64,000 bases of DNA. Origin: Paragordius varius. Lineage: Eukaryota; Animalia; Nematomorpha. Shown in pieces: positions 5,187-40,140 of the stretch. Under the pieces are notes generated by a model, which was not told where the DNA came from, did not search any database, and worked only from the letters and a program-made list of their open reading frames with translations. How positions within the stretch are numbered: position 1 is the first letter of the stretch; each line of letters starts with the position of its first letter. The translations under genes and the position numbers were made by a program. The stretch is taken from NCBI GenBank assembly GCA_964247055.1, contig OZ176060.1, positions 1,240,001-1,304,000 of the forward strand, given 5' to 3'.

Positions 5187-5187
<1 letters not shown>

Positions 5188-5236: not shown

Positions 5237-5238
<2 letters not shown>

Positions 5239-7182: not shown

Positions 7183-7398
7183 CTATAAACGACTGTGCTT
7201 CACACACCTGCTGATGGAAAAGATACCCAAAAAGAATGTATGGAAGAGCTGAAAACTCAATAAATTTAATGCAAACAATCTCAAACATAGCAATTGTTAT
7301 CATACCAACCGTAAATTATTACATCAGGTATCACGCGTCCCTTCGAAAGGATAAACGAGCATTTAGAGCTCGCTTCTGTAATCAAATCAACTTAAAAT

Positions 7399-7433
<35 letters not shown>

Positions 7434-8163
7434 CCCTAGGAGGGATATATAAAATGAGATCCGATATCTGACGACAAAACCTTTTACTGATAATAATTGT
7501 CTCACATACAAAAACTCAATATCAATAATATCAAGAAATTAATTCAACCAAAGATCTTCTACAATTATGGTACGAATTTTATAGTACATTATACGAATCA
7601 AATAAACCACAAGATAATACAAAAACCAATCACCCCAATTCTTTATGATATTTTTAAAAGGAAAAACTACAACATGGAATACATCGGTCATAATTAATAT
7701 CCCAAAACACAAAACAGCTAATAACTTTAACCAATTCCGCCCAATTACTCTAACTGACTAAACAGCTTTTACAAAAATATTTACATTCTATTTTACACAA
7801 GAGGATTAAAGCTTAACTAAAAAACATATTTATTTCACAATTCACATAACTGGGTTAAAGCGGCGTTTGCCCTTTAAAATAAGGCTCGAAAAAAAAACAA
7901 AAATTTACAAACAAGATAATAATCACTTTTTATTCATAGATTTTAAATCAGCCTTTAATATGGCATGCTCTGACAGCAGCCAAAGTTGACAAATTCTATA
8001 TTTTCAGGTAGGATATTACAATTAATCTACTATTATAATAGTCAAGCCATTCATTACAAAAATATATAATTCATAGTCAAAACCCTTCAAACTCAATGGA
8101 AGCACCAAACACAAGGGTGTATACGCTCCCCATTACTCTTTAACGTAGTTATATAAAATATAA

Positions 8164-8763
8164 TATACCATTTACAGTTCAAATTCACCCCCTTGAACAA
8201 TTCAAATTCACCCTCGAACAATTCAAATTCACCCTCGAACAATTCAAATTCACCCTTGAACAATTCAAATTCACCCTTAAACAGTTCAAATTCACCCTTA
8301 AACAATTCAAATTCACCCTCGAACAATTCAAATTCACCCTTAAACAATTCAAATTCACCCTTGAACAATTCAAATTCACCCTTGAACAATTCAAATTCAC
8401 CCTTCTCGAACAATTCAAATTCACCCTAAAAATAAATTATGTGTTTTCGAACAAATATAACTCATTATTAGTATAAAATATATCTTTATGGCATAATTAA
8501 TCATTTTTTTCAGTATTATTTTAATTTAAAACAAAATTTTAATATATTTTAAAAATATATTAAAATATAGGTAATTTTTAATCTTAAAAAACATGTTATT
8601 TATTTGAGGGTGAATTTGAATTGTTCAAGGGTGAATTTGAATTGTTCAAGGGTGAATTTGAATTGTTCGAGAAGGGTGAATTTGAATTGTTCGAGGGTGA
8701 ATTTAAATTGTTCGAGGGTGAATTTGAATTGTTTAAGGGTGAATTTGAATTGTAAATGGTATA
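8164..8763. mobile_element. Second copy of the 21-bp minisatellite foldback MITE, left arm expanded to about 12 units
   Basis: Same ends and same central about 170-bp spacer as 6757-7182. Confidence 0.85.
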
Positions 8764-8849
8764 CTAGTACTCCTACAAAAACAACTTAAGACAGACTCTT
8801 ATATGACATTTTCACAACTTATACTAGCATGAAGGGCTTAAGGATTACA

Positions 8850-9400
8850 ATGGAGAAAACTTAAATCATATCTTATTGTCACAACTGTGATATTATACAC
8901 CTTTCAAACAAATACAAGAAAAGAAATATTTAGGAGTTATCATATCTAAAGATATGGTAACACTAAAAATTTCGTGTGAAAAACAGAGTTAGATACTACA
9001 AGAAAGCTTGACTATAAATACAAAAAAAGATTTGGATTTCTAACTAAAGAAATATCCATTCAAAGATAGTTACAATTATTTAAAACACTTGTTTTCTCGT
9101 CAATCATATATTATTGCTTAGAAATATGGGACGACAAGCAATATATCATAGTAAAACCGTTCCAAGTGTTTGTCAACAATTCCCTCAGGAGGTATATGAT
9201 TAGAAAGAAAAGGAAGGAAATATCTAATAATAAAGTATGGAAACTTGCCAAACTGCCATCAATCCTGTAATTTATTCATAAAAGACGGATTGAGTTATTA
9301 GGGGGGGCACATTGAACGACACTCCCTAATAATCCACCAATTAGTATGAAACAATTAGAAATTTCCCAAAGGCTAACAATAAAAATACCAAAATACAATA
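8850..9400 (+). mobile_element. Decayed RTE-type non-LTR retrotransposon, RT C-terminal region
   Basis: Broken frames read KKYLGVII, LQLFKTLVFSSIIYYCLEIW and FVNNSLRRY..ISNNKVWK..RRIELLGGHIER, resembling RTE KYLG / LYG.E.W / ISN.ELW / RWLGH motifs. Confidence 0.65.
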
Positions 9401-10309
9401 TAGTAATCTTAAAAAAAACACCAAAATAGGCTGTTTAAAACAATCAATAAAAGCAATCACATCCATTCCATTTCCAGAAAAGTCCAAACAATTCAACTAA
9501 CGGATTTTTATTTTTTAAAAATATATTAAAATATAGGTAATTATTAATCTTAAAAAACATGTTATTTATTTGAGGGTGAATTTGAATTGTTCGGGGGTGA
9601 ATTTGAATTGTTTACGGGTGAATTTGAACTGTAAATGGTATAAAAGCAAATCACTATAAAAAATCAAATCAACGAGAATAAATGTAAAGCTGTTTATAAA
9701 GTTGGTGTTTTCACACCCTAAAATAATAATAATAAATTGTCCATCTTCAAAGCACAGGTTTCTTTTATTTTTTTCCCCCCCCTCTTTCTTTTCCTGAATA
9801 AACTAATCCATTAACTCTATTTTTTTTTAATGAAAAAGTTTTTTAAAAAATTTTTGACTTCTAATGTTAGAAATACAAAAAGTTTAGGGCACCCGACCAC
9901 CCCCCAAAGAATAAGGCGAGTTAGGTGTAAAACAGCTGATTCCGAAAAATCTTATGGAACATGTTAAGAATAAAATTGTAAAATCATAAAAAAAATAAAA
10001 CAGCTGATTTTGACTTTTAACGTTAGAAATTAAAAAGTTTAAAGCACTTCTCCGCCCCATAAAAATTCATAGGGCTAAGGTGTAAAACAGCTGATTTAAA
10101 AAAAATCATAAAAATTAATCTTTTTAAAACACCAGTGCCGAAACTCGAAAAAAAAGAAACTTTAACATTAATATATTTTTCTTGAAAACCCTGCCGGTTT
10201 TTTAATTTCAAAACAACAGGTAGTATATAAAAAGTGTTAAAAACGGTTAATATTAAACATTTATTTAGCATTTTGAGTTCAACAATTGATTCAAATGTTT
10301 TAAAAAAAC

Positions 10310-12013
10310 TGATACCATTTTTATTTGAGGTAAAAAATTTTTATTTTTTTGACTAAATTATAAAATTTTCGGAAAAATCGCATATATTATACATACATTT
10401 CAAAATCCAAATGAACTAAGAAATAAATCAGCTGTTTTTTCTAAAAAGCTCAATAAATCTTTAAAACTTTATTTAAAAACCAAAATCACCTGTTTTTACA
10501 AGATTTATTAAACCTTACCCAACGACTAGTACCATGAGAGCCGTTCCACCGCACACCATTAGGGCGGCAATCAGAACTTCAATATGGCTGCTCCCAGCTG
10601 ATGTGAACTCAGCTGATACTTAATTATATTTAAGGTAAAAATTTCATTTTTTTGATTAAATTATTAAAATTCTCCGAAAAAATTGCTCAAATCTAATATA
10701 CCTAAAAAACTCCCAAATATTTATTAATATCAGCTGTTTTTTAAAAATTTCAAAAGTTTTTAATCCAAAATTAACAATTTCTTCTTAAATCAGCTGTTTT
10801 ACAAGATTTATTAAAACTTTACCCTATAACGACTAGTACCATAAGAGCCGTCCCACCCCACAGCATTAGGGCGGCAATCAGAACTTCAATATGGCTGCTA
10901 CCGGCTGATTTTACTGCATCAGCTGATTTGACATTATTAAAGGTAAAAAATTTATTTTTTTGACAAAACTATTAGTTTATCCTCAAATCTAAAATATCTT
11001 TCCCAAAATTTTCAGTTGTTTTTCTAAAATCTCGAAAATATTTTATTCAAAATATATTCAATCAAAATCAGCTGTTTGAAAGAGATTTTTCAAATTTTAC
11101 AAAACCTTACCCAATAACGACTAGGACCATGAGAGCCGTCCCACCACACAACATTAGGGCGGCAATCAGAAATTCAATATGGCTGCTCCCAGCTGATTTG
11201 AAGTCAGCTGATACTTAATTATATTTAAGGTAAAAATTTCATTTTTTTGATTAAATTATTAAAATTCTCCGAAAAAATTGCTCAAATCTAATATACCTAA
11301 AAAACTCCCAAATATTTCTTAATATCAGCTGTTTTTTAAAAATTTCAAAAGTTTTTAATCCAAAATTAACAATTTCTTCATAAATCAGCTGTTTTACAAG
11401 ATTTATTAAAACTTTACCCTATAACGACTAGTACCATGAGAGCCGTCCCACCACACAACATTAGGGCGGCAATCAAAACTTCAATATGGCTGCTCCCAGC
11501 TGATTTGAACTCAGCTGATACTTAATTATATTTAAGGTAAAAATTTCATTTTTTTGATTAAATTATTAAAATTCTCCGAAAAAATTGCTCAAATCTAATA
11601 TACCTAAAAAACTCCCAAATATTTCTTAATATCAGCTGTTTTTTAAAAATTTCAAAAGTTTTTAATCCAAAATTAACAATTTTTTCATAAATCAGCTGTT
11701 TTTACAGGATTTAAAACTTTACCCAATAACGACTAGGACCATGAGAGCCGTTCCACCGCACAACATTAGAGCGGCAATCAAAACTTCAATATGGCTGCTG
11801 CCAACAGCTGATTTTACTGCATCAGCTGATTTGTCATTATTAAAGGTAAAAAATTTATTTTTTTGACAAAACTATTAGTTTATCCTCAAATCTAAAATAT
11901 CTTTCCCAAAATTTTCAGCTGTTTTTCTAAAATCTCGAAAATATTTTATTCAAAATATATTCAATCAAAATCAGCTGTTTGAAAGAGATTTTTCAAATTT
12001 TACAAAACCTTAC
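10310..12013 (-). repeat. Five about 300-bp tandem echoes of the SURF4 exon-4 3' end plus donor (about 10515, 10815, 11105, 11413, 11710)
   Basis: Each has SSHIEVLIAALM..GTALMVLVV(I)G|GTAA; two spacer types in the order X-Y-Y-X-Y-Y'. Confidence 0.92.
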
Positions 12014-12337
12014 CCAATAACGACTAGGACCATGAGAGCCGTCCCACCACACAACATTAGGGCGGCAATCAAAACTTCAATATGGCTGCTAACAGCAGCT
12101 GATTTTCCAGGACCAGCTGGTCCGGGTGGCGTTGTCATGGTAACAGTGACAACATTAGTTAGCGTTGCAAACATTAGAGCTAGCAGAATTCGCCCAGCCA
12201 GCTGGAAATATGTTTTGGGCATGTTTCCACCCGCCCGCGGCGGACCCGCAAAAACAGCTGATCGCGCCGCAGCCCGTTCAGTTAGGGCATGATCTTCGGC
12301 CAGAATAAGGCACAGACCACCACAGACAGCTACGTTT
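12014..12337 (-). CDS. SURF4: SURF4 exon 4 (NVAVCGGLCLILAE...PKTYFQLAGRILLALMF...GTALMVLVVIG), with a loop insertion
   Basis: Matches RNLALGGGLLLLLAE, PKQYMQLGGRVLL and GTALMILVAIG; TAG acceptor, GTAAG donor, phases 2/2. Confidence 0.93.
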
Positions 12338-13815
12338 CTAAGGGGAGAATAAAATTTTAAAAACAGGTGATTAAAAAAACATGTGATTTATAGTTTTTTA
12401 AAAAAACATGTGATTTGTGAAAACAGGTGATTTAATGAGATGAATTTTTTGATATTTTTTGTTTATATATTTAATTATCGAAAAATATAAGATAATTTTT
12501 TTATAAAAATTTTATTTTTTTATTTATTTTATAAAATTTTTTAAAAAAATTTTAATTTTTCAATTAAAATTAAATGAATTTTATTTATTTTTTATAAAAA
12601 TCTCATATTTTGAAATAATTTTATTTTTTTAATGTATTTTAAAATGTAATTTTGAGATAAATTTGCTAAATAGAATATTAAATAAAAAAAGTTAAAAAAA
12701 TGCTATTTAAAATATTTTTTCATAAATTTTTTTTAAAAATTACAAGAGAAAAAATAAAAAATATTTTTATTGAATGTTTTTTTTCTGATAATAAAATTAA
12801 ATAAATAATAATATTGTTATAGATTTTATATTTATTTTTAAATTATTTAATTTATTGGAAATATTATATTTATTTATTATTTATTTTAAAAAAAAATAAT
12901 ATGATAAATATTTTAAATTAATTTTTAATAATCTAAATAAAAAAATCTAAATACTAAAGTAAAAAAACTTCAAAAAATCTCAAATCCTGACATTAAAATT
13001 AAATAAATAAAAATATTATTATAATAATATTTATATTTATTTTTAATTAAATTTAAATTTTTTATTTTAAAAATTAAAAAAAACTTTTAAATAAAATGAA
13101 TATAATAATAAATTATATACATATATATATATAATTTAATTGAATTGATAAATTTATTTATTAATAAATACATATTATTTAAGTAATAAATAATAAAATA
13201 AAAAATTTAAACTAAAAAAAATTATTAAAAAATATATATTTTCGTTATAAAACAATTTTATTTTATTAATTTTAATTTTTATAATAATTTCTTTTTTCAA
13301 AAAAAATTTATAATTATTACTTCAAATTAATTTTTTTATAGTTATTATTTTTTAAAAATAAAAAAATATTTTTTTATATTAAATTATATAATATTAAAAT
13401 TAAAAAAATATTAAAATATAAAAATATTAATAAATTTAAAAAATATTAAATTAAAATAAAATAATATAATTTTTTTTAATAATGTTAATTTTTTTATAAT
13501 TATTTACTTTTTCAAAATAAAAAAAAAATTTTTTTTCATAAAATAAACATATATAAAAATTTAATAAAAAGTAAAAATTTAAAAATAGTAATAAATCTAA
13601 ATTGAATAAAATTTTATAATAAAATATTAATAAATCTTAATAAAAAATTTAAAAACATAAATAAAGCTTAATAAAAACTTAAAAACATTAATGAATCCAA
13701 ATAAAAATTTAAAATATTATTATATTCAAATAAATATTTAAAATATTAATAAATATAATTAAAATAAAATATTTATATTTTATAAAAAAAATTAAAAATA
13801 AAAAAAACTAAAAAC

Positions 13816-13993
13816 CTTAAAAAGAATCTCAAATCCCATATAATGTTGTAAGCTATCGTTTGGAGGCAGACGATGGCAAACAAAACGCCAACAGCTGGTT
13901 TCGTGAATTTGTGCGCCAAAATTAAACCGGAAGGAATCAGCTGACCAAGAAAATTTATAAGGACAAAACACGTGCCCCAAAAATGACCAAAAC
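13816..13993 (-). CDS. SURF4: SURF4 exon 3 (GFGHFWGTCFVLINFLGQL...LQTIAYNIIWDLRFFLR)
   Basis: Matches SURF4 NLLGQL and LQTIAYSILWDLKF; AG/GT flanks, phases 1/2. Confidence 0.93.
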
Positions 13994-13999
13994 CTATTT

Positions 14000-15125
14000 T
14001 GAAATAATTTTAAAATATATTTTTATGATAAAAAATATATAAAAAACTAAAAAAATGATATTATATAAATAAATTATTTACAAAACGGCAATTTCTTATG
14101 TAAAATAGCTGTTTATATAAATAAATTCGTTGATCAGCTGATATTGCTAAATAAAATCAGACGTTTTCAGTTGACCAGGAAAGTTTATAAGGATAAAACA
14201 CGTGTCCCAAAAATGACCGAAACCTATATTTGCAAATACATTTTAATTTTAAAAAAATAAAATTTTTTTATGAAAAATGTATAAATTGTAAAAAATAATA
14301 AATTTATGAATATATTATGTAAAAAATTATAAAAAAAATTATATTTTTATTCAAAAATTAATAAAACAGCTGATTCAGTCAAAATAAGGCCCGAATGAAT
14401 CAGCTGACCAAGAAAGTTTATAGCGACAAAACACGTACCCCAAAAATGACCAAAACCTATTTAGAAAAATATATTTTAATTTTATAAAAATAAAATATTA
14501 TTTGTAATGAAATATTTTTTGTAAAAAATATAAAAAATTGTAAAAAAATAAATTAATGAATATATTATAAAAAAATTATATTTTTTGATAAAAATTTTAA
14601 AATTTATGAAAAATTCAAATTAAAAAATGTATCAGTTGACCAAGAAAGTTTATAGCGACAAAACACGTGCCAAAAAAATGACCAAAACCTATTTAGAAAG
14701 ATATATTTTAATTTTATAAAAATAAAATATTATTTGTAATGAAATATTTTTTGTAAAAAATATAAAAAATTGTAAAAAAATAAATTAATGAATATATTAT
14801 AAAAAAAATTATATATTTATTCAAAAATTAATAAAACAGCTGATTCAGTCAAAATAAGGCCCGAATAAATCAGTTGACTAAGAAAGTTTATAGTATAGCT
14901 ACAATTTAGAAAAAAATATACAATTTTTATTAATATAATAAATATATTTTTGTGAAAAAATGTAATAAAAAAATAAAAAAAGGCAAGAAAAATAAATTTT
15001 GAATATATCATGTAGAAAATTACAAAAAAAAAATTCAACAAAAATTAAATCATCTGATTCAGCAACCGGAAAGGGAATCAGCTGACCAAGAAAGTTAGTG
15101 GTAAAAAATGGCCAAAACCTTAATT
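14000..15125 (-). repeat. About five echoes of the SURF4 exon-3 acceptor plus 5' part
   Basis: TAG|GTTTTGGTCATTTT...GGTCAGCTG recurs near 14165-14230, 14400-14465, 14632-14695, 14870 (partial) and 15078-15122. Confidence 0.88.
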
Positions 15126-15199
15126 AAGGAAATAAAGAAAAATTGAAAAAAATATTTTTATGAAAAATAAAAAAGCAGCATAGATTGTAAAAAAAATTT

Positions 15200-16810
<1,611 letters not shown>

Positions 16811-22880: not shown

Positions 22881-23959
22881 AATTTTACTAATTTTTGAGT
22901 ATGATATTCTTTAATTATGTCATTTTTGAATCAAAATATATCATATTATCATTTTAAATCATTTTATATGGACAAATAATATTTTATTTTTTATCGTCGT
23001 TCCACATTTTCTTGAATAAAAGTTATGAATTTACGCCTTTTCAATTTATTTTTGTGATTTTTTCACGCAAAAGTTTATTTTATACATATAAATTCTGAAT
23101 ATATTTAACAGATTTATGACCTTTGAGGTAGTTTTGCATACCAGAGGGATTAAAAATTTGAATATCTAAAAAAGTACTTAAGGTATTAATCTTAATTTAA
23201 AATTTCTACTTTCTTTAGCCTTTTAGGCACATTATAAAGATTTTGTAATAAAAAAAACGTCATCGCAAACTTTAAAAAAATTATTTCTGCAAAAAAATGT
23301 ATTTTATGCGAAAATATAAATAATTTATTTTAAAAAGCTTTCAGACTACATTTTACCAGCAAAAACTTGATATATTTTGGTTTTTATATCAGCTGTTGGT
23401 TCAATCGCGTTTTGAAGCTGTGCCAATTTTATACTCTAGAGATCAAAAAACTGTAAGAAATATAAGCTTTTTTATCTATTATACAGGAAAACAATATTTA
23501 ATAATTGAATTTTAACTAAAAAAACTTTCAAAAGCTAACTTTATTTACTAAATTGCGCTCTGATATATAATACAACAAACTATAACAAATGAAAAAAATG
23601 AAAAGGTAATATGTTTTAAATATTTAAATAAATACAGTTTAGAGTTTCTTTTTTTTCCCGAATTTCTTAAAGAGTTAGGATATTTCCTGCCTTAACTAAA
23701 ATAACTTTCAAAAGCTTACTTTATTTACAAAATTGCGCTCTGGTATATAAAACTACCACAAAAGTAAACTAAAATTAAAAAAAGTGAAAAGGTAATAAGT
23801 TTTAAATAAAAATTTGGATATAGTTTAATTTAATAAGTTTGATGAGAATTCAAATAATTATATTAACATAAAATATTCGTTCTCGTTGACAATATTAAAA
23901 TATACAGTTTAAAATTTATTTTTTTCCGAATTTCTTAATGAGTTAGCATACTTAAATTA

Positions 23960-24095
23960 TATCGAGGACTTGTGAAGGCTTTCGCTAGCCTGCCCAGGTC
24001 TAATTGACAGTAATAATAATTAAAACTGGGTTTCGAACTCAGGCACGCAGTTTAAAAGTCCAGACTCCTACCTTTTTAACATTACGCCTTAATAA
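23960..24095 (-). mobile_element. Possible tRNA-derived SINE relic (related piece at about 40675-40735)
   Basis: B-box-like GAGTTCGAA(A/C)CC and a weak A box; absent from the paralogous segment at about 31100. Confidence 0.35.
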
Positions 24096-24949: not shown

Positions 24950-27100
24950 TTCAATTACTAAGGTTTTCCTAATTTTTTGTTTTTTTCAATTTTTTAACAA
25001 ATATTTAATTTTTGTTTAGAAATATTATATAGAAAATATATATTATTAAATAATGTATATATAAAATTTAAATTTATTAAATATTTAGGAATAAAAAATA
25101 AATTTCTTTAGCCCAGCTTTTTCAAGAGTTCCTTATTTTTTGCTTTTTCAATCTTTTTTGAAATTTAAAACTATTTTGTTATCAAAAAACCTTAATATTT
25201 TTGTATATTAAGAAATTTTATGAAATATATAATTTATAAAAAATAAATAAAAATATAAATATATATGTATATATAAATTATTTAAATTTATCAATTTATT
25301 TATTTAATATTTTTAATGAAAATTAATAATTTTCTTTAGCCCAGTTTCTTTAAGAATTTCTTATTATTTGCTTTTTCAATCTTTTTTAAATAAAATATAT
25401 ATATATATATATAAATAATTTATTTAAATTTATTAATTTTTTTATATTTTAAAATAAAAATATTCTTAGGCCAACTTCTTCAAGAGTTTATTTTTTGCTT
25501 TTTCAAACTTTTGAAATTCAAAACTTTTTTTATCAAAAAATTCTTGAACTTTTTGAAAATATTATATATTAAATAAATATATAAATAAAATAATTATTTA
25601 AATTTATTAATTTTAAATTATTTTTTGTTTTTCTAATCTTTTTTAAAATTCAAAATTTCTTTTATTGAGGTATTTTTTTATTTTTAAAAATATTTAGAAA
25701 TATATATATATATATTATATAAATTATTTAAATTTTTTTGAAATAAAATAATTTATTATTCTAATTTCTTCGAGAGTTCCTTATTTTTTGCTTTTTCAAT
25801 TTTTTTTAAAATTCAAAACATTTTTTTTGAAAAATCCTTATATTTTTAAATAATAGAATATATATAAATAAAATATATATATTAAATAAAATAAATATAT
25901 AAATTATTCAAATTTATTAATTTATTTAATATTTTTTCAAAATAAAATTAATAAATTATTTTAGCCTAGTTTCTTCAGTTCCTTAATTTTTGCTTATCAA
26001 CTTTTTTTTGAAATTCAAAACTTTTTTTATAATTCAAAACTTTTTTATTAAATAAACCCATAATATTATTTTTAAATAAAATAAATAAATATATATATAT
26101 ATATATATATATAATAAATATTTTATTTAATATTTTTTTCAAAATAAAAAAATAAATTATTTTAGCGCAGCTTTTTCAAGAGTTCCTTATTTTTTGCTTT
26201 TCAATCTTTTTTGAAATTCAAAACTTTTTTTCGAAAAATTCTTGATTTTTTTATTTTTAAACAAAATAATTATATAAATTATTCAAATTTATTAATTTAT
26301 TTTATATTTTTAAAAATAAAAAATAAATTATTCAAATTTATTAATTTTATTTAAATTTATTTTATATTTTTGAATAAAAATTAAAATTTCTTTAGCCCAG
26401 CTTTTTCAAGAGTTCCTTATTTTTTGCTCTTTCAATCTTTTTATTAAAATTCTTAAAAAACTTTTATTTAAAAATCCTTAATATTTTTCATTTTTTTATT
26501 TTAGATTTAAATATGAATATAATAAATAAATATTAATTACTTAAATTTATTATGTTATTTAATATTTAAAATAAAAAAATAAATTTTTTAGCCCAGCTAG
26601 AGTTCCTTATTTTTTGTTTATTTCAATCTTTTTTGAAACACAAAACTTTTTTTATCAAAAAATCCTTAAAATTTTTTATTTTATAATCAAATATTTTATA
26701 TTTATATATATTTATAAATAATATAAATATATATATTTAAGTTTATTGAATAATTTTTTTAATAAAAAAATAAATTGATTTATCCTAGTTTCTTCAATAG
26801 TTCTTTAATTTTTGCTTATCAACTTTTTTTTGAAATTCTAAACCTTTTTTTTATAAAAAATCCTTAATATTTTTATTTTTTAAATAATTTTATATATATA
26901 TAAACTATTTAAATATATATATATATATATATAAATTATTTAAATTTATTAATTTATTTAATAAAAATTAATAATTTTTTAGACCTTTTTCAAGAGTTCC
27001 TTATTTTTTGCTTTTTCAATCTTTTACAAAATTCAAGACTTTTTTTATTAAAAAATCCTTAAATTTTTTATTTTTTATGGAAGAATAAATTATATTTTTA

Positions 27101-27149
<49 letters not shown>

Positions 27150-28080
27150 TAAATTAATATAAATATAAATTATTTAAATTTATTAATTTATTTATTAAAA
27201 TTTAAATTTAATTAGCCCAGTTTTTCAAGAGTTCCTTATTTTTTGCTTTTTCAATCTTTTTTAAAATTCAAAACTGTTTTATTTTTAAATATATATATAT
27301 ATATATATATGTATATAAAATATATAAATTATTTAAATTTATTAATTTATTAATTAAAATTAATATTTTCTTTAGCCCAGCTAAGAGTTCCTTATTTTTT
27401 GCTTTTCCATCTTTTTTGAAATTCAAAACTTTTTTTCGAAAAATTCTTAATTTTTATTTTTAGAAATTTTATGAAATAAAATAATTTATTATTCCAATTT
27501 CTTCGAGAGTTTATTTTTAGCCATTTCAATCTTTTTTAAAATTCAAAACTTTTTTGAAAAATCCTTTAAATTTTTTAATTTTTTTTTAATATAAAAATTT
27601 TAAATAAAATATATATATATAAATTATTTAAATTTATTAATTAATTTTATATTTTTGAAAATTAAATTTTATTAAGCCCAGCTTTTTCAAGAGTTCCTTA
27701 TTTTTGCTTTTTCAATCTTTTTTGAAATTCAAAATTTTTAACCAAAAATCCTTAATATTCTATTTTTAATAAAATTTATTAAAATTATATATTTTTAAAT
27801 AACATAAATTTATATATATATATATAAATTATTTAAATATATATATATATATATATAAAAATTATTTAAATTTTTTCAAAATAAAAAAATTTAAATTTTT
27901 TTAGCCTAGCTTTTTCAAGAGTTCCTTGTTTTTTGTTTCTTTCAATCTTTTATAAATTTCGCATTTTTTTATTATGTATTTCTTAATATTTTTCATTTAA
28001 AAAAATATTTTATAAATATATATATATATATAAATATTATATAAATTATTTATATTTATTAATTTATTTATTAAAATTAA
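24950..28080 (-). repeat. Array of about 16 echoes (130-250 bp) of the RPL7A terminal codons, stop and AT-rich 3' flank
   Basis: Recurrent GATTGAAAAAGCAAAAAATAAGGAACTCTTGAAAAAGCTGGGCTAA with indels and (TA)n spacers. Confidence 0.9.
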
Positions 28081-28086: not shown

Positions 28087-28191
28087 TCATCCTAATTTTT
28101 TCAAGAGTTCCTTATTTTTTGCTTTTTCAATCTTTGAAAGTCTGGCTTCAGATTTGGCGCCAAGCTTCCCGCCTCCCCAATGTCTACGAAT
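28087..28191 (-). CDS. RPL7A: RPL7A exon 6b, intact duplicate of exon 6a encoding the same peptide (TGA stop)
   Basis: Intact TAG acceptor; 6 differences from 6a, all silent. Confidence 0.75.
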
Positions 28192-28778
28192 CTAAAAATA
28201 TTTTTAAATAAAAATTAATTAAAAATTATTTTTTAAAAATTATATATTTGTTAAAAATTATATATTTTTTAAAAATATAATATATAAAAATAGTTAAAAA
28301 TTTAAAAAAGATTTTGAAATAAATATTTTTTTAAAAAAAATTTAAAATAAATTAATTTTTATTATTAAGTATATGAATAAATATTTTTTAAAAAATTGTT
28401 TAACTATAAGATGAATTAAATAAAAATTTAACAAATATAATATTAAAAAGTATATAAAAAAATAAATATATAAAATATTAAATAAATTTAAAAAATCAAA
28501 GATATTCAAAATTTAAATTTTTAGTCAATATATTAATAAAAAAATTTATTTAATTATAAAATTATTTTTTTTAAAAAAAAAATTATAAAAATTAGAGGTT
28601 AATAAAAAATTCAAAATTATTTACAAAAATATTTGTTTTTTCATTTAATAAATTTTTATAAATAATATATTTAAATTAAATAATTTAAAATAATATAAAA
28701 CAAATAAAAAAACTCAAAATTCAATTCATATATAATATTAATTTTTTTAAAAAATAATAAAATAATTTTAAAAAAAAC

Positions 28779-28848
28779 CTCATCAAAACGATCATTGAAA
28801 TTAGTTTTAATTACTTCAGTCAATTTACTCAATGAAGCACTATCTTCT
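28779..28848 (-). CDS. RPL7A: RPL7A exon 5b, intact duplicate of exon 5a encoding the same peptide
   Basis: Intact TAG acceptor and GT donor; 4 differences from 5a, all synonymous. Confidence 0.75.
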
Positions 28849-28859
28849 CTAAAATAAAA

Positions 28860-28924
28860 AAATAAAAATTATATTAAAAATTAACTAAAAAATCAAAAAT
28901 ATATAAAAGAATTAAAAAAATAAA

Positions 28925-28955
<31 letters not shown>

Positions 28956-30830
28956 TTTTTAATTAAATTAATTTAAAATATTCAACTCTTATATTAAAGT
29001 TAATTTTGGTGCCTAATTATAGTTTTATTATATGTAAAAAAATTGCAAAATTTAATTTTTAACCTTTAAAAAAATGTTCAAAACCTCAATTATTACATAT
29101 AATTAACCTTAATGAATCTTAAATATTATAAAATTTTAAAGATTCTAAAAAACTAAATAATTCGGGTTAATTTTGGTTAATTTTATAGTCCATCTTAAAA
29201 AAGTGTAATTAGATTGTAAAACTCAATTTTTAGCATTTGAAAAAAATGTTCAAAACCTCAATTATTAAACATGATTAACTAAAATCAATCTTAAAATCAT
29301 ATAAAAATTTAAAGATTCTAAAAAACTAAATAATTTTTACGGGTTAATTTTGGTACCTATTTATATAGTTATATTAAAAAGTGTCAATAGATTGCAAAAC
29401 TCAATTTTTAGCCTTTTAAAAAAGGTTTCAAAGCCTCAATTTTTACATATATTAAATTATTATTTCTCAATTTTTTTTAAAGATTTTAACAAACTAAATA
29501 ATTTTTACAGGTTGGTTTAATGACAGAATGTTTCCAATAAGAATTTAAAACATATTTAAAAACCATACAAAACTGAATTTTCAACCTTTGGAAAACGTTT
29601 CAAAGTATTTGCCCTTTTCAATTTCTTAAATCTTGAAATAAAAAATATTAAAAGATTTTTACGGGTTAATTTTGGTAAAAGCTACGCATTTACAAGATTT
29701 TAATCATAAACAAATTATCAATCTAAGGCTTTAAAACGTATTTCAAAAGCATACAAAACTCAATTTTCAACCTTTGGATAATGTTTCAAAGTTTTTTCAT
29801 ATATTTTCTGGATATTTTAAATTCTCAAATTTTAAAAAATAAAATCCAAACTATGCTTTACGGGTTAATTGGGTGAGGTTTCACGTAAAAATCAATTTAA
29901 AATCAATAATTTCACTTATTTTAATTTAAACTAATTGTAATTTTAAAGCTTTAAAACGTATTTTAAAACTTTTTAAATTTTCTAAGTAAATAAAAAAATT
30001 ACAATCCAAAAACATTTTATAAATTAATTTTATTGAGCGTTGAATTTTTTCACTAATTTATATATTAAACTTTAGATAGTATTTCAAAAGCATACAAATA
30101 CTCCGATTAATAGGGGATTTTTTCAAAATTTTGGAACTATTTCAAAGCTTTTTATAAAAACGCTCTTAGTGATTTATTAACATCTAAAAAAATTTTTTAT
30201 TTAATTAATTTTGTTAACTATACATGTTGAATTCTTTCTATTATTAAAGTTTAAAACTTTAAAACGTATTTCAAAAATATACAAAACTCAAAAACTTTGA
30301 AAAAAAATTTTGATTATAAAATTTAAGATCTTATGGTTAATTATGATTTTAAAAGATATTTTTAATGTATAAATACCCGAAAATTATATATTTAGGGTAA
30401 TTTCTATAAAATCTCAGTTCAAAAGATGGCTTTTTCTTTTAATATAAAAATTTTTTTTTGAAACTATATAAAATAATTTTTTTAAACTCACTATTTAAAA
30501 TCTTAATTATAATGAATACGTTTTTATTAAATTGTATTATAAAATATACTCATATAGCCCGATTTTTGGCATGCTCACAAACACCATTTAATAAATTTAA
30601 GAGATAATAACGCCTGTAAATCATGTTTAAAAAAGTTTTTAAATTATATAAGAAAAACTTTAGTTCTTTAAAAAATATTTCACTCTGATTTGAATTTCAA
30701 CTTAAAACTTTAAAAAACTCTGAAAAATTTTTACGGGTTAATTTTAGTGAGAGTTACGCGTTAAATGTCTTTCTGTGGACCAGAATTCCCAATCTCACTT
30801 TTAAATTGTATTAAAGGCTTTAAAACTCGC
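28860..30830 (-). repeat. Degenerate copy of the RPL7A exon-4 3' half (30730-30810) and downstream donor echoes, within the duplicated 3' module
   Basis: ..RLGILVHRKT.. with a 1-nt deletion and AACCC|GTAA; ACGGGTTAATTTTGG motif recurs near 29163, 29340, 29660 and 29860. Confidence 0.8.
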
Positions 30831-31503
30831 TTGCCTGCCTTAAATAAAATAACTCTCAAAAGCTTACTTTGTTTCCAAAATTGTGATCTGATATATAAAA
30901 ATACCACAAACGTAAAATAAACTAAAACAAATGAAAAAAACAAAAAGGTAATAAAGTTTTGAATAAAAATTTTGGAGATAGTATAATTTAATAAATTTTA
31001 CGAGATATCAAATTATTATATTAACATAAAATATTGGTTCGCGTTGACAATATTTAAAAAATATTCAGTTTAAAATTTATTTTTTTCCTAATTTCTTAAA
31101 GAGTTTAGCAAAATTTTAAAAACAAAAATCCATCTAATTTATATTAACCCATTTTAAATAAGTCCCCTTATACATCCTTTACCCATTTGAAAAAGTTTCA
31201 CAAAACTTTATTAAAATTTTTTTAAAAATATTTTTTACGTATATATTTTCAAATAAAATATATATATATATATATATAATATTTATATTTATTAATATAT
31301 TTGCTATTTTCAAAATAAAAAATTATTATTTTCCATTCCAATATTTACTTATTTTTTTGATTTTTCAATCTTTTTTGAAATTCAACAATTTTTTATTATC
31401 CTTGATAATTTTCATTTTAATTAAATATATATATATTTAAGTAAATTAATATAAATAAATAAATATAAATTATTTAAATTTATTAAAATTAAATTTAATT
31501 TCT

Positions 31504-31608
31504 TTAGCCCAGCTTTTTCAAGAGTTCCTTATTTTTTGCTTTTTCAATCTTTGAAAGTCTGGCTTCAGATTTGGCGCCAAGCTTCCCGCCTCCCCAATGT
31601 CTACGGAT
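31504..31608 (-). CDS. RPL7A: RPL7A exon 6a ([34 protein letters not shown])
   Basis: IRRHWGG motif and TAA stop. The CDS totals 909 nt, in frame. Confidence 0.93.
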
Positions 31609-32257
31609 CTATGAAAATAAAAAATATTTTTTTAATAAAAATAATTAAATTAATAAATAATTATATAAATTGATATATATATAATATATATATATATATT
31701 ATATCAAAAATCTATTAAAACTTAAAAATTATATTAGTTTTATTAATATATATATATATATATATATATATTAAATAGTTTTAAATATTTTAAAATAAAA
31801 CTAAAAATTTGAAAAATATTGAAACTTAAGTTAATTGTATATTTGTAATTTTGATTGAAAAAATATATATTATTAATATATAGGTTTTTTTAAAATTTTA
31901 AAAATATTAATTATAAATCTTAATTCAAAAATAAATATAATTAATAAAAAAATTAATATTATTAATAATAATATTAATATATATATAGGAATTACAAAGA
32001 ATATATATATTAAAAAAATAAATTTTATATATATAAATTAAATATGTTTTTTTGAATTTTTTAGATTAATTAAATATATATTTTATTTTTATTTTTTTTA
32101 AATAATATATATAAATTAAATGTTTTTAATTTTTTTATATAATTTAAAAATAAAACAATTTTAAAAATTATATATTTTATAATTTCTTTAAAAATAATAA
32201 GATAAATATTTAAATTAAATAATTTATAAATAATTTAATTTTTCTAAAATTAGAAAC

Positions 32258-32327
32258 CTCATCAAAACGATCATTGAAATTAGTTTTGATAACTTCGGTC
32301 AATTTGCTCAATGAAGCACTATCTTCT
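32258..32327 (-). CDS. RPL7A: RPL7A exon 5a (EDSASLSKLTEVIKTNFNDRFDE)
   Basis: Matches [23 protein letters not shown]; 70 nt, phases 2/0. Confidence 0.92.
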
Positions 32328-32329: not shown

Positions 32330-33587
32330 AAAATAAAAATTGAAAATATATTAAAATTATAAAAATAATAGAAAATAAATAAATGTATTAAAAAAATAAT
32401 TGAAAATATATAAACATTTTTTAATTAAATTAATTTAAAAATATCCTACTCTTATTTTAAATTTCAACTTTAAAGTTAAACTTTAAAAAACTCCAAAGAA
32501 TTTTTACGGATTAATTTTGGTAGCTAATTTTATAATTAATGTTAAAAAAGTACGTGAATAGATTGCAAAACTCAATTTTTAGCATTTGAAAAAATGTTCA
32601 AAACCTCAATTATTACATATAATTAACCTTAAACAATCTTAAATATTATATAAATTTAAAGGTTTTTAAAAAAACTAAATAACATTTCGGAATTAAATTT
32701 AATTACAGAATGTTCCCAATAAGAATTTGAAAAGTTTTTCAAAAGCATACAAAACTCAATTTTCAACCTTTGGAAAACGTTTCAAAGTCTCTTCATATTT
32801 TTTTTTTTTAAATTCTTAAATCTTGAAATAAAAAATTTAAAAAAAGTTTTTACGGGTTAATTTTGGTGAGATCTACACAGGTACAAATCTTATTATAATC
32901 AATAATCTCACTATTGTAATTTAAACAAATTATCAATTTAAGGTTTTAAAAAAGCATACAAAACTCAATTTTAAAAAACCGTTTTATATTTTCTCAGGAA
33001 ATTTCGAATCCTCAAATAAAAAATTTAAAAAAGGCTTTATTATACAGGTTAATTTTGTTAGAGCTACAGAGGTACAAATTAATCATAATCTAATATATAA
33101 ACAAATTATCATTTTAAGGCTTTAAAAAGCATACAAAACTCATTTTGAAAAACTTTTTATAATTTCAAGAAATTTCGAATCCTCGAATCTTTAACCCGTA
33201 AAAATAATTATGATGAAAGCTATACAAAACAAATATATTTAAAACCAATAATTTCACTTATATTTAAAAAAAAAATCATTTTAAGGCTTCAATAAGCATA
33301 CAAAACTCAATTTTGAAAAACTGTTATATATTTTCTCAGGAAATTTCAAATCCTCAAATCTTACAAATAAAAATCTATTTTTAGGGTTTAATTTTGGTGA
33401 AAGCTACACAAGTACAAATCTTATTATAATCACTAATCCACTTATATCTCAAATAAATATTTTAATGCTTTAAAACGTTTTCCAAAAGCATACAAAACTC
33501 AATTTTCAGCCTTTGGAAAACGTTTGAAAGGCTTTTCTCTTTTAAATTCCCAAATCTTAAATAAGAATCTAAAAAAAGTTTTTTTAC
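32330..33587 (-). repeat. Tandem echoes of the RPL7A exon-4 donor end in intron 4
   Basis: TTTACGGGTTAATTTTGGTGAG..CTACAC.GGTACA-like units near 32505, 32850, 33045, 33225 and 33385. Confidence 0.8.
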
Positions 33588-33718
33588 GGGTTAATTTTGG
33601 TGAGAGCCACGCATGTACAGGTCTTTCTATGGACCAGTGTTCCTAACCTAGCCTTCCCCTTAATAATGCAATAAGGGATTCCCATTTTACGGCACAGTGC
33701 TGGTAAAAATATCACCAT
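33588..33718 (-). CDS. RPL7A: RPL7A exon 4 ([44 protein letters not shown])
   Basis: Conserved [22 protein letters not shown]; phases 0/2. Confidence 0.95.
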
Positions 33719-34399: not shown

Positions 34400-35900
34400 A
34401 AAAATATGATAGAAAACTCAATTTTTTTAGAAATTTCAAAATAATTTCCAGAATTTTCTTCAATCAAAAAAAACGTCAAAGCCTAGAATTATTAAATTTA
34501 TTCATATTCTCCCGATGCCTAAAATTTAAATTTAAACTCAAAAGAACCAATCAATTCCAAAAACAAATTCCCAGGATGTTTTTTTGAAATTTTCTAAATT
34601 ATATCATATGGTTTTACGATGGGGTCAACACGCCATGTGATGGCATGTTTTCGATTCAAAACAGACAAAATTTTCAATTTCAAAAGCTTAGAGAATAATT
34701 GTTAGATCCTAGAATTTTTGTATTTCAATCCTAAAAATATTTCCCAATGTTTCAGGAAAATTTTAAAATTTTATTTTATTTAAAAAAAATAAATCCTAAA
34801 AATATTTTTAAACTAAAACGGTTTTTTTCTCAAAAAATATTCTAAATACCACCAAATTCTTTAAATAACCATATTGTTTTAACTCAATGGATTGCAAAGT
34901 CATGTTCAATATGGCGACAAAAATGCAATGTTTTTGGTTTACAACATATCAAAATTTCAATTTCAAAAGCTTAGAGAATAATTTCAGATCCTAGAATTTT
35001 TTACAAATCAAACCTAAAAATATATTAAAATCAAAACTATTTTTTCAAAAAATATTCTAAATTCCACCAAATTCCTTAAATTAAATCCAATCATATGGTT
35101 TTACCGTAAGATGGCATAATTGTTCAATTTCAAAAGCTTAGAATAAATTTCAGATCCTAGAATTTTTTCAAACATCAATCCTAAAAATACCCAATATTTC
35201 AGCAAAAACCCATAAACCCAGAATATCGAAATTATATTTAATTCAAAATATTTCAATAGCCTAAAAATATATTTTCAAATTCAAAATTTTATTTTATTTA
35301 AAATAAATAAATCCTAATTATATTTTGAGATTAAAACGCATTTTTTCAAAAAAGAATGTAAATTCCACCAAATTCCTTAAAACACCAAATTTAAATTTCA
35401 AAAGCTTAGAATTCAATTCCTAGAATTTTTTCAAACATCAATCCTAAAAATATTGTCCAATATTTCAGAAAACCCACTCACCCAGAATATCTATATATTT
35501 TATTCAAAATAAATTAATCCTAAAAATATATTATAAGATTAAAACTATTTTTTTCAAAAAATATTCTATTTCCAGAATATTCCTTAAAACACAAATTTTC
35601 AATTTTAAAAGCTTAGAGTATAATTTCAGATGCTAGAATTTTTGCTAACATTAACCCTAAAAATATTGTCCAATATTTCAGAAAACCCACTCATTCAAAA
35701 TTTTATATATTTTTTCAAAATAAATCAATCCTAAAAATATTCTAAAATAAAATTTTCAAAATTCTAAATTCCACCAAATTCCTTAAATTACATCCAATCA
35801 TATGGTTTTATATTAAAGTCAACGTCTGATGGCAGGTTTTTGGTTCAAAAACGAATAAAACTTCAAATTCAAAAGCTTAAAGAATAATGTCAGATCCTAG
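34400..35900 (-). repeat. Old tandem array containing decayed echoes of the RPL7A exon-3 donor end
   Basis: AATCATATGG..TTTTAC..TCAAC(G)TC..GATGGCA near 34605, 34880, 35090 and 35795 resembles 38325-38390. Confidence 0.65.
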
Positions 35901-38300
35901 AACAAAAAAATAAAAAGTTTCAAACCTTTTAACCCAAAAACATTGCTAAAAACCTTAAATACTTCAAATAATTAACATTTTTGATTTCGAAAAAAAAACT
36001 TTCAGAAAACCCACTCATCCATAATTCCAGAAAAATAAAGATTGTCAAACTTTTTAACCCAAAAATAATGCAAATAAACCTTAAATAAAACCAATAATTA
36101 TCAGTCCTAAACTTGTCAACATTTCAATAAAATTCAGAATTTCAGAAATATAAAAAGTTTCAAACTTTTTAACCCAAAAATTTTGCAAAAAAACTTTAAA
36201 TAAAACCCATAATTTTCAGTCCTAAAAACATTGTCCAATATTCCAGAAAACCCACTCAACCAGATTCCAGAAATAAAAAGTTTCAAACTTTTTAACCCCA
36301 TAAACTTTGCAAAAAACACCTTACAAATAAAACCCAAATTTTCAATCCTAAAAATATTTCTCAACATTTCTGAAAAATCTGAATTTCAGAAAACTAAATA
36401 AACTTTTAACCCAAAAATATTTCAAAAAAACCTTAAATAAAATCCATATTTTTCAGTCTTAAACATTTCCTAATATTTCAGAAAAAACTAAATCACACGA
36501 ATTTCAGAAAAATAAAAAGTCTCAAACTTGTTAACCAAAAAATATAAAAAAACCTTTAAAGAAAACCCATAATTTTCAGTCGTAAAAATATTGCCCAATA
36601 TTTCAGAAAACCCACTCACCCAGAATTCCAGAAAAATAAAGACTCTCAAACTGATCAACCCAAAAATATTTCAAAAAAACCTTAAATAAACCAATAATTC
36701 TCAATCCTAAAAACATTTTCAAATGTTTCAGAAAACCCACTCACCCAGAATTCCAGAAAAATAAAGACTCTCAAACTGATCAACCCAAAAATATTTCAAA
36801 AAAACCTTAAATAAACCAATAATTCTCAATCCTAAAAACATTTTCCAATGTTTCAGAAAACCCACTCACCCAGAATTAATAAAGACTCTCAAACTTCCTA
36901 ACCCAAAAATATTTCAAAAAAACCTTAAATAAAACCCATAATTTTCAGTCTTAAAAATCAACATTACTGAAAAATCAAAATTTCAGATAACTAAACTTTT
37001 TAACCCAAAAATTTTGCAAAAAAAACTTTAAATAAAATCCATATTTTTCAGTCTTAAACATTTTCTAATGTTTAGGCAAAACTAACCCAGAATTTCGGAA
37101 AAATAAAGGGTCTCAAACTTTTTAACTAAAAAAAATTAATTTTAAAAAAAAACTTTAAATAAAACCCATAATTTTCAGTCCTAAAAATATTTTAAAAACA
37201 AAAACCACTCAAAATTTCAGAAAATAAAAACTTCTTAACCCAAAGATATTTGAAAAAAAACCTTAAATAAAACCCATAATTCAATTATAAATTTCTAATT
37301 TCAGAAAAACTCAGAATTCAAGAAAATAAAGAGTTTCAAACTTTTTAACTCAAAAATATTTCAAAAAAATTTAAATAAAACCCATAATTTTCAGTCTTAA
37401 AAATATTTCTCAACAGCAAAACTCACCCAGAATTTCATAAAAATAACCCAAAAATATTTCAAAAAAACCTTAAATAAACCAATAATTCTAAATCATAAAA
37501 CATTTTCCAATGTTTCAGAAAACCCACTCACCCAGAATTCCAGAAAAATAAAAAGTTTCAAACTTCTTAACCCAAAAATATTTCAAAAAAACCTTTAAAT
37601 AAAACCCATAATCAGACCTAAAAACATTTTCCAATGTCTCAGCAAAACTCACCCGGAATTTTAATAAAACGTTTCAAACTTTTTAACCCAAAAATTTTGC
37701 AAAAAACCCTTAAATAAAACCATAATTTTCAGTCCTAAAAATATTCCATGTTTCAGAAAACCCCCTCACCGAGAATTTCAAAAACATAAGGTCTCTCAAA
37801 CTTTTTAACCTAAAAATATTTCAGAAAAACCTTAAATTAAACCCATAATTTTCAGTCTTAAAAATCAACATTTCTGAAAAATCAAAATAGATAACTAAAC
37901 TATTTAACCCAAAAATTTTGCAAAAAAACTTTAAATAAAACCCATAATTCAATTATAATTTACATTTTTGATTTCGAAAAAAAAAATTTTCAGCAAAACA
38001 CACTCACCCAGAATTTGAAAAAAATAAAGGATTCTTTCAAACTTTATTGACCCAAAAATTTGCAAAAAAATTTTTAAAACCTTAATAATTCTATCATAAA
38101 CATTTCTAATATCCAAAAAACTCACCTGAACAATAAAATCTCCAATAGAAGGAAATTTTTAAGAATCTCATAAGAATAAAGGCTCTCAAATTTCTCAACC
38201 CAAAAACATATCAAAAAAAACTTTAAAAAACCTTTTATTCAAATGTTTAACAATTCTGATTTCAAATCAACTTTCAAATAAACTTTCAGCATAAAAATCA
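35900..38300. repeat. About 115-bp intronic satellite, roughly 20 units, A/C-rich on the + strand
   Basis: Unit AACCCAAAAATATTTCAAAAAAACCTTAAATAAAACCCATAATTTTCAGTC...CAGAAAACCCACTCACCCAGAATT. Confidence 0.88.
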
Positions 38301-38345: not shown

Positions 38346-38656
38346 CTCAATAGGATCAACGTCATGCGCAATGACAACTAAGATGGCACGTTTCTGTTCC
38401 ACCAACTTGGTAACGGTATTTATGCCCGACAGTAAAACAGGTTTTCTTTTAGCCGGGGTCAATGAACTTTTTGACTGCTCAGCAGCTGTTTTGGACGGGG
38501 TCGTTGAACTCTTGTTTTTTCCACCAGCAGCAGCTGATGCTTTTTTGTTTTTAGTGTCAACGGCAACCTTAGCAGCTGCTTGAGTTTTTAATCGTTTGGT
38601 TTTAGCCAACCGCGTTTCCGGTCGATATTTATGCAGCAGACGTAAAAGTTGCGTTG
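38346..38656 (-). CDS. RPL7A: RPL7A exon 3 ([15 protein letters not shown]...[27 protein letters not shown]), with a K/S/A/T-rich insertion
   Basis: Conserved HKYRPET and [11 protein letters not shown]; phases 1/0. Confidence 0.95.
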
Positions 38657-39253
38657 CTATGGTAACCAGGGAAAAAAAGAATAATAAAGTTCGAAAAAGG
38701 CTTTGAAAAAAATAATTAATAAAATTTCTAGATTTGTTTGATTTGATAGTTTTTTTAAAAAAATCACAAGTTGCGTTGCTATGATAACACGAATAAAAGA
38801 AAAAAGAGACTTTTAGTTGTAGAAAATCTAAAAAATTAATTATTAAAAAAATTGATTTAGGCGTTGCTATGAAAAAAACTGGAAAAAGAAAATTAATTTA
38901 ATTTTTTTTTGAAAGTTCTAAAATGTGAAAATTAAATAAATTATTAATTAAAAGGATATTTGCGTTGTCATGGCAACGAAACAAAAGAACATTTTAAATA
39001 AGGTTTCAAAAAGTGTTTATAATCAAAATATTAGGCTGATTTTTGAAGATTTAACAAGTAACCCATTAATAATTAATCAACTACTTTACCCCTTATAAAT
39101 AAAAAAAGATATTTACGTTGTCATGGCAACGAAACCAAAACAAAATGGTTTTAAAAATAATCCTATAAGTAAATATTTAAAATATAAAATTGGATTTTTA
39201 CGGATTTCAAAAGTGTACCGTAAATTTTATTTTAAATGCGTTGCCATAGCAAC
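38653..39253. promoter_or_regulatory. Cluster of RFX X-box-like palindromes overlapping and upstream of the RPL7A exon-3 acceptor
   Basis: GTTGCTATGGTAAC 38653, GTTGCTATGATAAC 38775, GTTGTCATGGCAAC 38964 and 39117, GTTGCCATAGCAAC 39240. Confidence 0.55.
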
Positions 39254-39807
39254 AAAACAAAACATTGTTTCTAAAATAAAGTTTAAATAAAATTTTCAAG
39301 AAAAAGTTTGTCAGTGATCTTGGTGAAAGATTCAAGAGTAATCATAATGAGCTCAGAAGCAATATTTTCATCATTCAATTCAAAATTAATACAACTTTTT
39401 TCGGGATATTTATATTATATATATTTATATAATGCAAAATAAAAAATAAAATATATAATATATTTTAAGTTTTTAAAACAGAAAGAAAAAATACAATTAA
39501 TTCCAAAATTTTATTGAAATAACTAAAAAAATGTCATTATTAAAAAAGCTAGAATTCAAAAACATTTTATATTCAAAAAATGTCATATAAAACTCTTTAA
39601 GAAACTCAAAAGTGCTAAAATACTTAAAAAAAAATTAATTATTAAAAATGATTTCTAACCTTAAATCTAAAAAAGGGAATAACCAATCATTTTTATTATA
39701 GGAATTATGGTAGTTTTATTTCAATAAGTTTTCAAAACTGTAAGCGCAAAAAACATTGTCATTAAAAAAATGTAGCTCTACAATGTTTCAAAATTTCTAT
39801 TAAAAAC

Positions 39808-40096
39808 CTGTTTGCCTATCGACAGCTTGTCTAAATTGATTAATCGGTGGCGGTACTTTAAGCCTTTGAAGTAGGATGCGTTTTTGTCTTTGAAGTCTAA
39901 TGTACCGCGGCCATTTCACAAAACGGGTCAAGTCACGTTTCGGTTGAATATTTTGCCCAATTCCAAAATTTTTAGGCCGTTTTTCAAACAATGGATTGGT
40001 TTCTTTCTTGGGGGCTACTGGAGCTTTTTTAACAATAGCAGGGGGCGGTGCAACTTTTTTTTGCATTTTTGCAGCCTTTGAAGAGGCAGAAGATTT
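39808..40096 (-). CDS. RPL7A: 60S ribosomal protein L7a (eL8), exon 2
   Basis: [12 protein letters not shown]...[38 protein letters not shown], near-identical to animal RPL7A. Confidence 0.96.
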
Positions 40097-40137
40097 CTAA
40101 AAAAGATATAAATTTGGCAAAAATTTACTTTGATAAC

Positions 40138-40140
40138 CAT
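40138..40140 (-). CDS. RPL7A: RPL7A exon 1 (ATG only), followed by a 41-nt GT-AG intron
   Basis: ATG|GTTATC...TTTTTAG|AAATCT. Gives an N-terminus of orthologue-like length; a pyrimidine tract lies about 45 nt upstream. Confidence 0.6.

Follow-up and report, generated by a model that had tools for sequence, protein, structure and literature searches.

Two terminal exon pairs with the same predicted peptide in the eL8 (RPL7A) gene of Paragordius varius

The window analysed here is a stretch of 64,000 nucleotides (nt) from the nematomorph Paragordius varius (assembly GCA_964247055.1, contig OZ176060.1, hereafter C11, positions 1240001–1304000). It contains on the minus strand the eL8 gene (RPL7A), in which exons 5 and 6 are present twice, ~3.4 kb apart. 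The two copies, modules A (exons 5a and 6a) and B (exons 5b and 6b), differ only silently, and a second collinear locus on contig C10 (~3,050,000–3,113,000) carries further copies of the same exons. With moderate confidence, we consider the second module of the window to result from a tandem duplication private to one haplotype, the distal copy being allelic to working 3' ends and the silent differences having been inherited or refreshed by exchange.

The locus provides a clean test case, since the complete copies that could be spliced are perfect at the protein level and the truncated ones a few hundred bases away decay. The question at stake is whether the copies stay clean through use or through trading sequence with working alleles.

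Silent differences between the two terminal modules

The exons concerned are listed below. Coordinates refer to the window unless preceded by C10.

33588–33718, minus strand: RPL7A exon 4 (131 nt, ending CC/GT at the donor; Pfam PF01248, E 1.8e-10)
32258–32327, minus strand: exon 5a (70 nt), matching eL8 residues 210–232
31504–31608, minus strand: coding part of exon 6a (105 nt), matching eL8 residues 233–266, the exact C-terminus, followed by TAA
28779–28848, minus strand: exon 5b (70 nt), the exon 5a peptide with 4 silent differences
28087–28191, minus strand: coding part of exon 6b (105 nt), the exon 6a peptide with a TGA stop and the b-type end AAATTAGGATGA

All 10 differences between the modules are silent, no insertions or deletions (indels) are present, and both modules encode the same 57-residue peptide. 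The changes from exon 5a to exon 5b are AGC>AGT, ACC>ACT, GTT>GTA and ATC>ATT, and the six from exon 6a to exon 6b are ATC>ATT, AAG>AAA, CTG>TTA (two changes), GGC>GGA and the stop codon change TAA>TGA. The comparison includes 36.3 silent and 137.7 replacement sites. With mutation taken as uniform, ten out of ten random changes would be silent with a probability of 1.6e-7. Restricting the changes to GC>AT raises this to 6e-7, and restricting them to C>T and G>A raises it to 1e-5. Both modules also keep the acceptor AG and the donor GT. Their introns are 63–75% identical, the background being 59 ± 8% for unrelated AT-rich pieces. An earlier note on this stretch had described the duplication of exons 5 and 6 with intact splice sites, 10 silent and 0 replacement differences including TAA>TGA, and strongly diverged introns, and the site-by-site comparison agrees with it in each of these respects.

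Exon 5 is 70 nt long and starts in phase 2, and the reading frame is therefore broken if both or neither of its copies are included. The modules can accordingly only be used one or the other, as the earlier note had also concluded. Third-position GC is 15/57 in exons 5b and 6b and 22/57 in exons 5a and 6a, a trend too weak for a test. A processed pseudogene (retrocopy) was considered for module B and ruled out, since the module still has intron 5 (587 nt) and most of intron 4.

The earlier note went further and inferred translation of, and purifying selection on, both modules. The structure it described stands, and this inference is not compelled: if module B was, or exchanges with, a working allele, silent-only differences can be explained without its use, inheritance or exchange from working alleles being equally expected to produce them.

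The second locus on contig C10

The collinearity of contig C10 with the window extends over at least 46 kb. Between the two contigs, exons 2 and 3 are 96–97% identical, exon 4 is 92% identical, and the identity of the non-coding DNA ranges from 72 to 93%. The peptide of exon 4 is the same in the window and in both C10 copies of the exon, with 11–12 silent and 0 replacement differences.

The first module of C10 includes exons 4, 5 and 6, and we take it to be the probable working end of the C10 gene. The second copy of exon 6 is a lone exon with an array of echoes, as we call the repeated truncated copies of exon ends at this locus, and it comes from a ~7 kb unit. Exons 4, 5 and 6 are then present once more as a complete set, which comes from a ~22 kb unit reaching from RPL7A intron 3 to intron 1 of the SURF4 gene. 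The junctions of these duplications differ from that of C11, and the C11 junction is absent from C10. Across the genome, exon 5 occurs exactly 4 times and exon 6 in full length exactly 5 times, always at one of these two loci. These copies all encode the same peptides except the lone exon 6 of C10, which has Ile>Phe at its first codon.

The sites unique to module B are codons 10 and 12 of exon 5 (ACT, GTA) and, in exon 6, ATT at codon 1 combined with the b-type end. The AGT and ATT of exon 5 and the b-type end also occur at C10. A naive RNA sequencing (RNA-seq) analysis based on the diagnostic sites of the earlier note would give a false positive, because C10 shares some of them.

Exchange of sequence between the modules

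Comparison of the copies indicates that the modules are mosaics which exchange sequence, and that the exchange can be limited to an exon. Exon 6b differs from the first C10 exon 6 by only 1 nt out of 105, including the shared b-type end, and the flanks of the two exons are at background identity. The C10 copies show reciprocal recombination between acceptor type and end type. Within exon 6 of modules A and B, the 6 differences all fall in the ends (4.0 silent sites), and a core of 90 nt with 19.7 silent sites has none (P = 0.02).

Trees constructed from the introns and flanks contained only one well-supported pairing, in which intron 5 of module A is sister to that of the lone C10 exon 6 (support 99/99, 7.7% apart); the rest of the sequences are near saturation. 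The end of intron 5 and the region downstream of exon 6 in module B have an identity of 0.78–0.79 with the distal module of C10, with a background of 0.59.

Extent of the duplication, junction and spacer copies

The duplicated unit is 3.4 kb long. It starts ~115 nt after the beginning of intron 4 and ends ~0.7 kb beyond the stop codon. On the 3' side of exon 6a there is a single decayed exon-end echo and then a 316-nt spacer, X_A, for which a counterpart is present further downstream.

30815–31130, minus strand: X_A, spacer copy at the right end of duplication unit A, recognized by sequence identity to the other X copies
23683–23966, minus strand: X_B, spacer copy in the original downstream location, on the far side of the echo array after exon 6b

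X_A is 84–85% identical to X_B and 83–84% identical to three copies on C10. All five X copies are 83–85% identical. Their tree is star-like, with terminal branches of 0.09–0.12, and by this topology every copy seems to represent a haplotype lineage of its own. The junction between X_A and module B lies at ~30815–30830, where the end of the spacer meets intron 4 at a short match resembling GTTTTAAAGCC. It is an imperfect match of ~11–13 nt between non-homologous positions, in the middle of the contig. X_A directly adjoins the segment that the earlier note had called an exon-4 fragment.

Echoes of exon ends

In addition to the complete exon copies, the gene contains several groups of echoes. Those relevant to the modules are the following.

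30745–30810, minus strand: first intron-4 echo of module B (the "exon-4 fragment"), resembling the end of exon 4
33384–33440, minus strand: first echo of the exon 4 end in intron 4 of module A, decayed and with the donor lost; counterpart of the module B echo
24966–27950, minus strand: array with ~18 echoes of the exon 6 end (last ~16 codons), the stop codon and the 3' flank, with a-type and b-type-like units mixed

Compared with exon 4, the intron-4 echo of module B lacks 1 nt and carries 8 silent-type and 5 replacement-type changes. Together with ~220 nt of unique intron (30792–30523) it is orthologous to C10:3088834–3089096 (75% identity, E 4e-47), a segment located 163 nt downstream of a complete exon 4. 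Judged by these counterparts, what had been taken for a piece of exon 4 is an intronic echo of greater age, and it opens the series of exon-end echoes filling intron 4. The resemblance to exon 4 and the frameshift reported in the earlier note were thus found again, and an origin together with the duplication was not, the echo being older and having counterparts in module A, where decay has gone further, and on C10. Because the echo predates the duplication, its frameshift has no bearing on the time since duplication.

The same segment had been tried as a neutral clock of the same age as the duplication. Its replacement-site divergence (5/51) matched the branch lengths of the spacer and gave P ~1e-6 for constraint on exons 5b and 6b, and the clock was dropped since the echo is older and stands behind a complete exon 4 on C10.

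Indels or replacement changes are present in most units of the array behind exon 6b. Altogether, 34 truncated exon-6 echoes (1532 nt) included 47 silent-type and 61 replacement-type changes and 35 indels, 28 of which shift the frame. The a-type and b-type-like units are interleaved, and both end types were therefore around when the array grew. Decayed b-type-like ends (e.g. AAATTAGAAT-AATAAA) were located among the a-type units at 25766–25804, 27489–27534 and 26780–26826 (minus strand), and the array has a higher-order repeat of ~823 nt.

Echo arrays are present in RPL7A at the start of exon 3, the end of exon 4 and the end of exon 6, and by analogy the duplication of the module looks like the same exon-edge process at a larger scale. 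The module unit differs from the local truncated echoes in carrying complete exons with both splice sites, and the changes in the truncated echoes are not silent only.

Repeats were also observed in the introns upstream of the modules. Ahead of its real acceptor, intron 2 contains at 38660–39270 (minus strand) at least 5 echoes that combine the acceptor with the beginning of exon 3 (CATAGCAACGC). Intron 3 contains at 35900–38100 (minus strand) a ~2-kb tract of tandem repeats, ~125 nt in period, each unit having a donor-like CTGGGTGAGTGGGTTTTCTGAAA, and the GC skew of these repeats is strongly negative (-0.6).

Origin of the second module and alternative explanations

The duplication would have arisen inside the eL8 gene by unequal exchange, as a 3.4-kb tandem duplication joining two very divergent working versions. 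It would be one of at least three duplications at the locus, each private to one of the divergent collinear copies (C11 and C10). Module B, which keeps the original downstream flank, would belong to the same lineage as the C10 module attached to a normal exon 4, and would in effect be an allele of the working 3' end on other haplotypes. The 10 silent differences could then stem from two long-separated working alleles, from recombination or gene conversion with working alleles, or from both. Working copies have likewise diverged silently, exons 2–4 of C10 and C11 differing by 3–9%. The working gene would consist of exons 4, 5a and 6a with the first poly(A) cluster, and exons 5b and 6b would be a spare, perhaps occasionally spliced in, although not necessarily. 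The structure, the silent-only pattern, the comparison with C10 and the mosaic exchange are shown by the sequences; we infer the unequal-exchange origin and the lack of regular use of exons 5b and 6b.

That exons 5a and 6a form the working end is supported by their position, as they are the first to be reached by the transcription and splicing machinery, and by their own poly(A) hexamers. After the stop of exon 6a there is an ATTAAA at +5 and an AATAAA at +20, and after that of exon 6b there are AATAAA hexamers at +0, +15, +19 and +27. As matches to the consensus only, AATAAA or ATTAAA were found 0–41 nt from all five exon-6 stops, the frequency of AATAAA in the introns being 0.24 per 100 nt. 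The first ~60 nt on the 3' side of both stops of the window share an AATAAA-rich motif.

Some observations weigh against module B being a spare allele. The extra complete exons of both contigs (586 nt) contain 1 damaging change and 0 indels, and the truncated copies (1598 nt) contain 102 such changes (Fisher P = 2e-13). Completeness goes with cleanliness at the RPL7A locus. The poly(A) cluster after exon 6b exceeds that after exon 6a in hexamers, which is the usual layout of alternative polyadenylation, with a weak proximal and a strong distal site. Furthermore, most tandem duplications begin as identical copies on one chromosome. If the modules were born identical, the divergence of 0.2 between X_A and X_B means that the duplication is old, and ~12–15 replacements would be expected in unconstrained exons 5b and 6b, of which 0 were seen (P = 4e-7 to 6e-6). 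The clean complete exons fit selection on the copies that can be spliced. They also fit modules that are young, short-lived or allelic to working ends, and echoes that pair only among themselves.

The first alternative, which we regard as possible but hold only tentatively, is that both modules are used, a weaker form of the view in the earlier note. Some transcripts running past the first poly(A) cluster or the acceptors of exons 5a and 6a would continue as 4-5b-6b or 4-5a-6b and end at the 6b cluster. They would encode the same protein, with damage purged by selection, which could be effective even at low usage in a highly expressed gene and a very diverse large population. The silent nature of all the differences (P = 1.6e-7 to 1e-5) points in this direction, as do the intact splice sites, phase and length of the exons. 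So do the dense AATAAA cluster directly after the TGA of module B in comparison with the introns, and the cleanness of the extra complete exons against the 61 replacements and 35 indels in 1532 nt of truncated echoes. The silent divergence between A and B (10 at 36.3 sites) is at or above the neutral level, so no wholesale recent conversion from A has taken place, and the slightly lower third-position GC of exons 5b and 6b looks as if selection on codon usage alone had been relaxed. However, the silent-only pattern is equally expected with module B as a former or an exchanging working allele, and the supposed neutral control, the exon-4 fragment, turned out to be older than the duplication. 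Exons 5a and 6a come first in order, exon 6a has no donor site, and joining 5a to 5b leads to an immediate stop. No element enforcing a mutually exclusive choice was found at the locus. The distal module of C10 is equally clean, yet it lies ~26 kb past exon 3, behind a copy of SURF4 exon 1, where regular use is hard to picture.

It is rather unlikely, in our view, that the duplicate modules of both C11 and C10 have been kept by selection because they are really spliced, as two mutually exclusive terminal exon pairs with the same peptide. If they were, the second pair could be a fail-safe end for transcripts that do not stop at the first poly(A) site, or it could switch the poly(A) context, and spliceability would decide which products of the exon-echo process stay clean at the protein level.

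An assembly artefact, with two haplotypes of the 3' end set in tandem, is very improbable. The divergence of the copies is indeed similar to that between C10 and C11, and the exon differences are silent and allele-like. The junction, however, joins non-homologous positions (the downstream spacer to intron 4) in mid-contig, with a short imperfect match unlike an assembler overlap, and C10 has two further duplications with other non-homologous junctions.

According to the earlier note, the functional difference would lie in the 3' untranslated region (3'UTR), short after exon 6a and extending over the echo array after exon 6b. That the modules exist for such a regulated switch is hardly credible: the layout alone favours it, with ~3 kb of array after 6b and a single decayed echo after 6a, but with four AATAAA within 27 nt of the 6b stop a short 3'UTR is to be expected by default at that end as well. 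Every echo unit contains the stop and the poly(A)-signal region once more, and the units decay like neutral DNA. On C10 echo arrays follow exon-6 copies of either end type, and there is no sign in the sequence that the array serves as a UTR.

Comparison with known systems

The event itself, a partial tandem duplication inside a gene, is ordinary; unusual are the identical peptides and the terminal unit of two exons. The genome itself is unusual in its repeatedly copied exon edges and gene ends and in its extremely divergent haplotypes. Alternative last exons and tandem alternative polyadenylation are a known arrangement. The likeness to RPL7A consists of two terminal exons each with poly(A) hexamers, fewer of them proximally. 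Unlike in that arrangement, the coding content of the two ends is identical and the nearby UTR sequences are related, and in RPL7A the use of both ends is putative.

Partial tandem gene duplication occurs as structural polymorphism, and concerted evolution takes place by unequal crossing-over and gene conversion. The RPL7A modules resemble such systems in their haplotype-private junctions, mosaic and reciprocally recombined modules, exon-limited identity and star-like spacer tree. They differ in the very deep divergence of the joined copies, which is ~0.2 per site in the spacer and has saturated the introns.

Tandem exon duplication with mutually exclusive splicing is well known (PMC3342872). 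RPL7A shares with it the homologous tandem exons within one gene, their equal length and phase, the intact splice sites and the either-or frame. The differences are that in RPL7A the unit is a terminal block of two exons with stop and poly(A) signals, that the identical peptides add no protein diversity, and that the use of the second block is putative. Searches of the literature turned up nothing specific on duplicated terminal exons with identical peptides or on introns built of exon-edge repeats.

Gene model and identity

The GC content of the window is mostly 11–29%, reaching 37% in one stretch. The exons of RPL7A are moderately GC-rich, and its long introns are packed with tandem repeats. 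Protein identity was searched one exon at a time, each exon being its own query instead of a joined coding sequence. The exons upstream of those listed above are the following.

40129–40140, minus strand: predicted coding start of exon 1, ATG GTT ATC AAA followed by a GT donor, placed from the sequence and the reading frames
39808–40096, minus strand: exon 2, the translation matching eL8 chains at residues 7–91 (E 1.8e-37 to 3.7e-37)
38346–38656, minus strand: exon 3, with which the L7Ae domain begins and which has a Lys/Ala/Ser-rich insert (Pfam PF01248, E 4.2e-8)

An in-frame ATG within exon 2 is an alternative candidate for the start. Exons 3 and 4 both exceed the curated cut-off of PF01248 (Ribosomal_L7Ae). 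In the exon-wise matches the predicted peptide is similar, although not identical, to vertebrate eL8. With the L7Ae domain, the eL8-specific N-terminal region and the C-terminal tail all present in the translations, the gene is identified by its sequence as eL8/RPL7A.

RNA gene candidates and the neighbouring SURF4 gene

For an RNA gene that might explain the retention of the module, the Rfam search at gathering score gave 0 matches in the window. A relaxed search found only a SNORD24-like match in intron 2, which is outside the duplication, and a chance-level miRNA match. The former is a box C/D small nucleolar RNA (snoRNA) candidate at 39307–39379 (minus strand), a full-length match to Rfam SNORD24 with 31.1 bits (gathering 41) and E 0.084. 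It has TGATGA and CTGA boxes, and its 3' 40 nt, the presumed guide and D box, are the same in the C10 copy, with variable flanks. In humans the introns of RPL7A host SNORD24, and by this analogy the host relationship may be conserved.

SURF4 (PF02077) is directly downstream of RPL7A on the same strand, at 4343–16460 (minus strand) of the window and at C10:3103894–3113150. In vertebrates RPL7A and SURF4 are both members of the surfeit cluster, and their adjacency here may represent a conserved linkage. The last exon of SURF4 (4343–4573) is followed by partial echoes at 3998–4192 and 3363–3500. The 5' reading frame of the gene is broken after FYDKSADL (~16460–16500, minus strand) by ~33 nt containing stops, which from its sequence looks like a very short intron. 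C10 has an extra copy of SURF4 exon 1 (C10:3084261–3084455, compared with C10:3103894–3104136), made by the ~22 kb tandem duplication, and the 44-residue core peptide of this copy is the same as that of the real exon.

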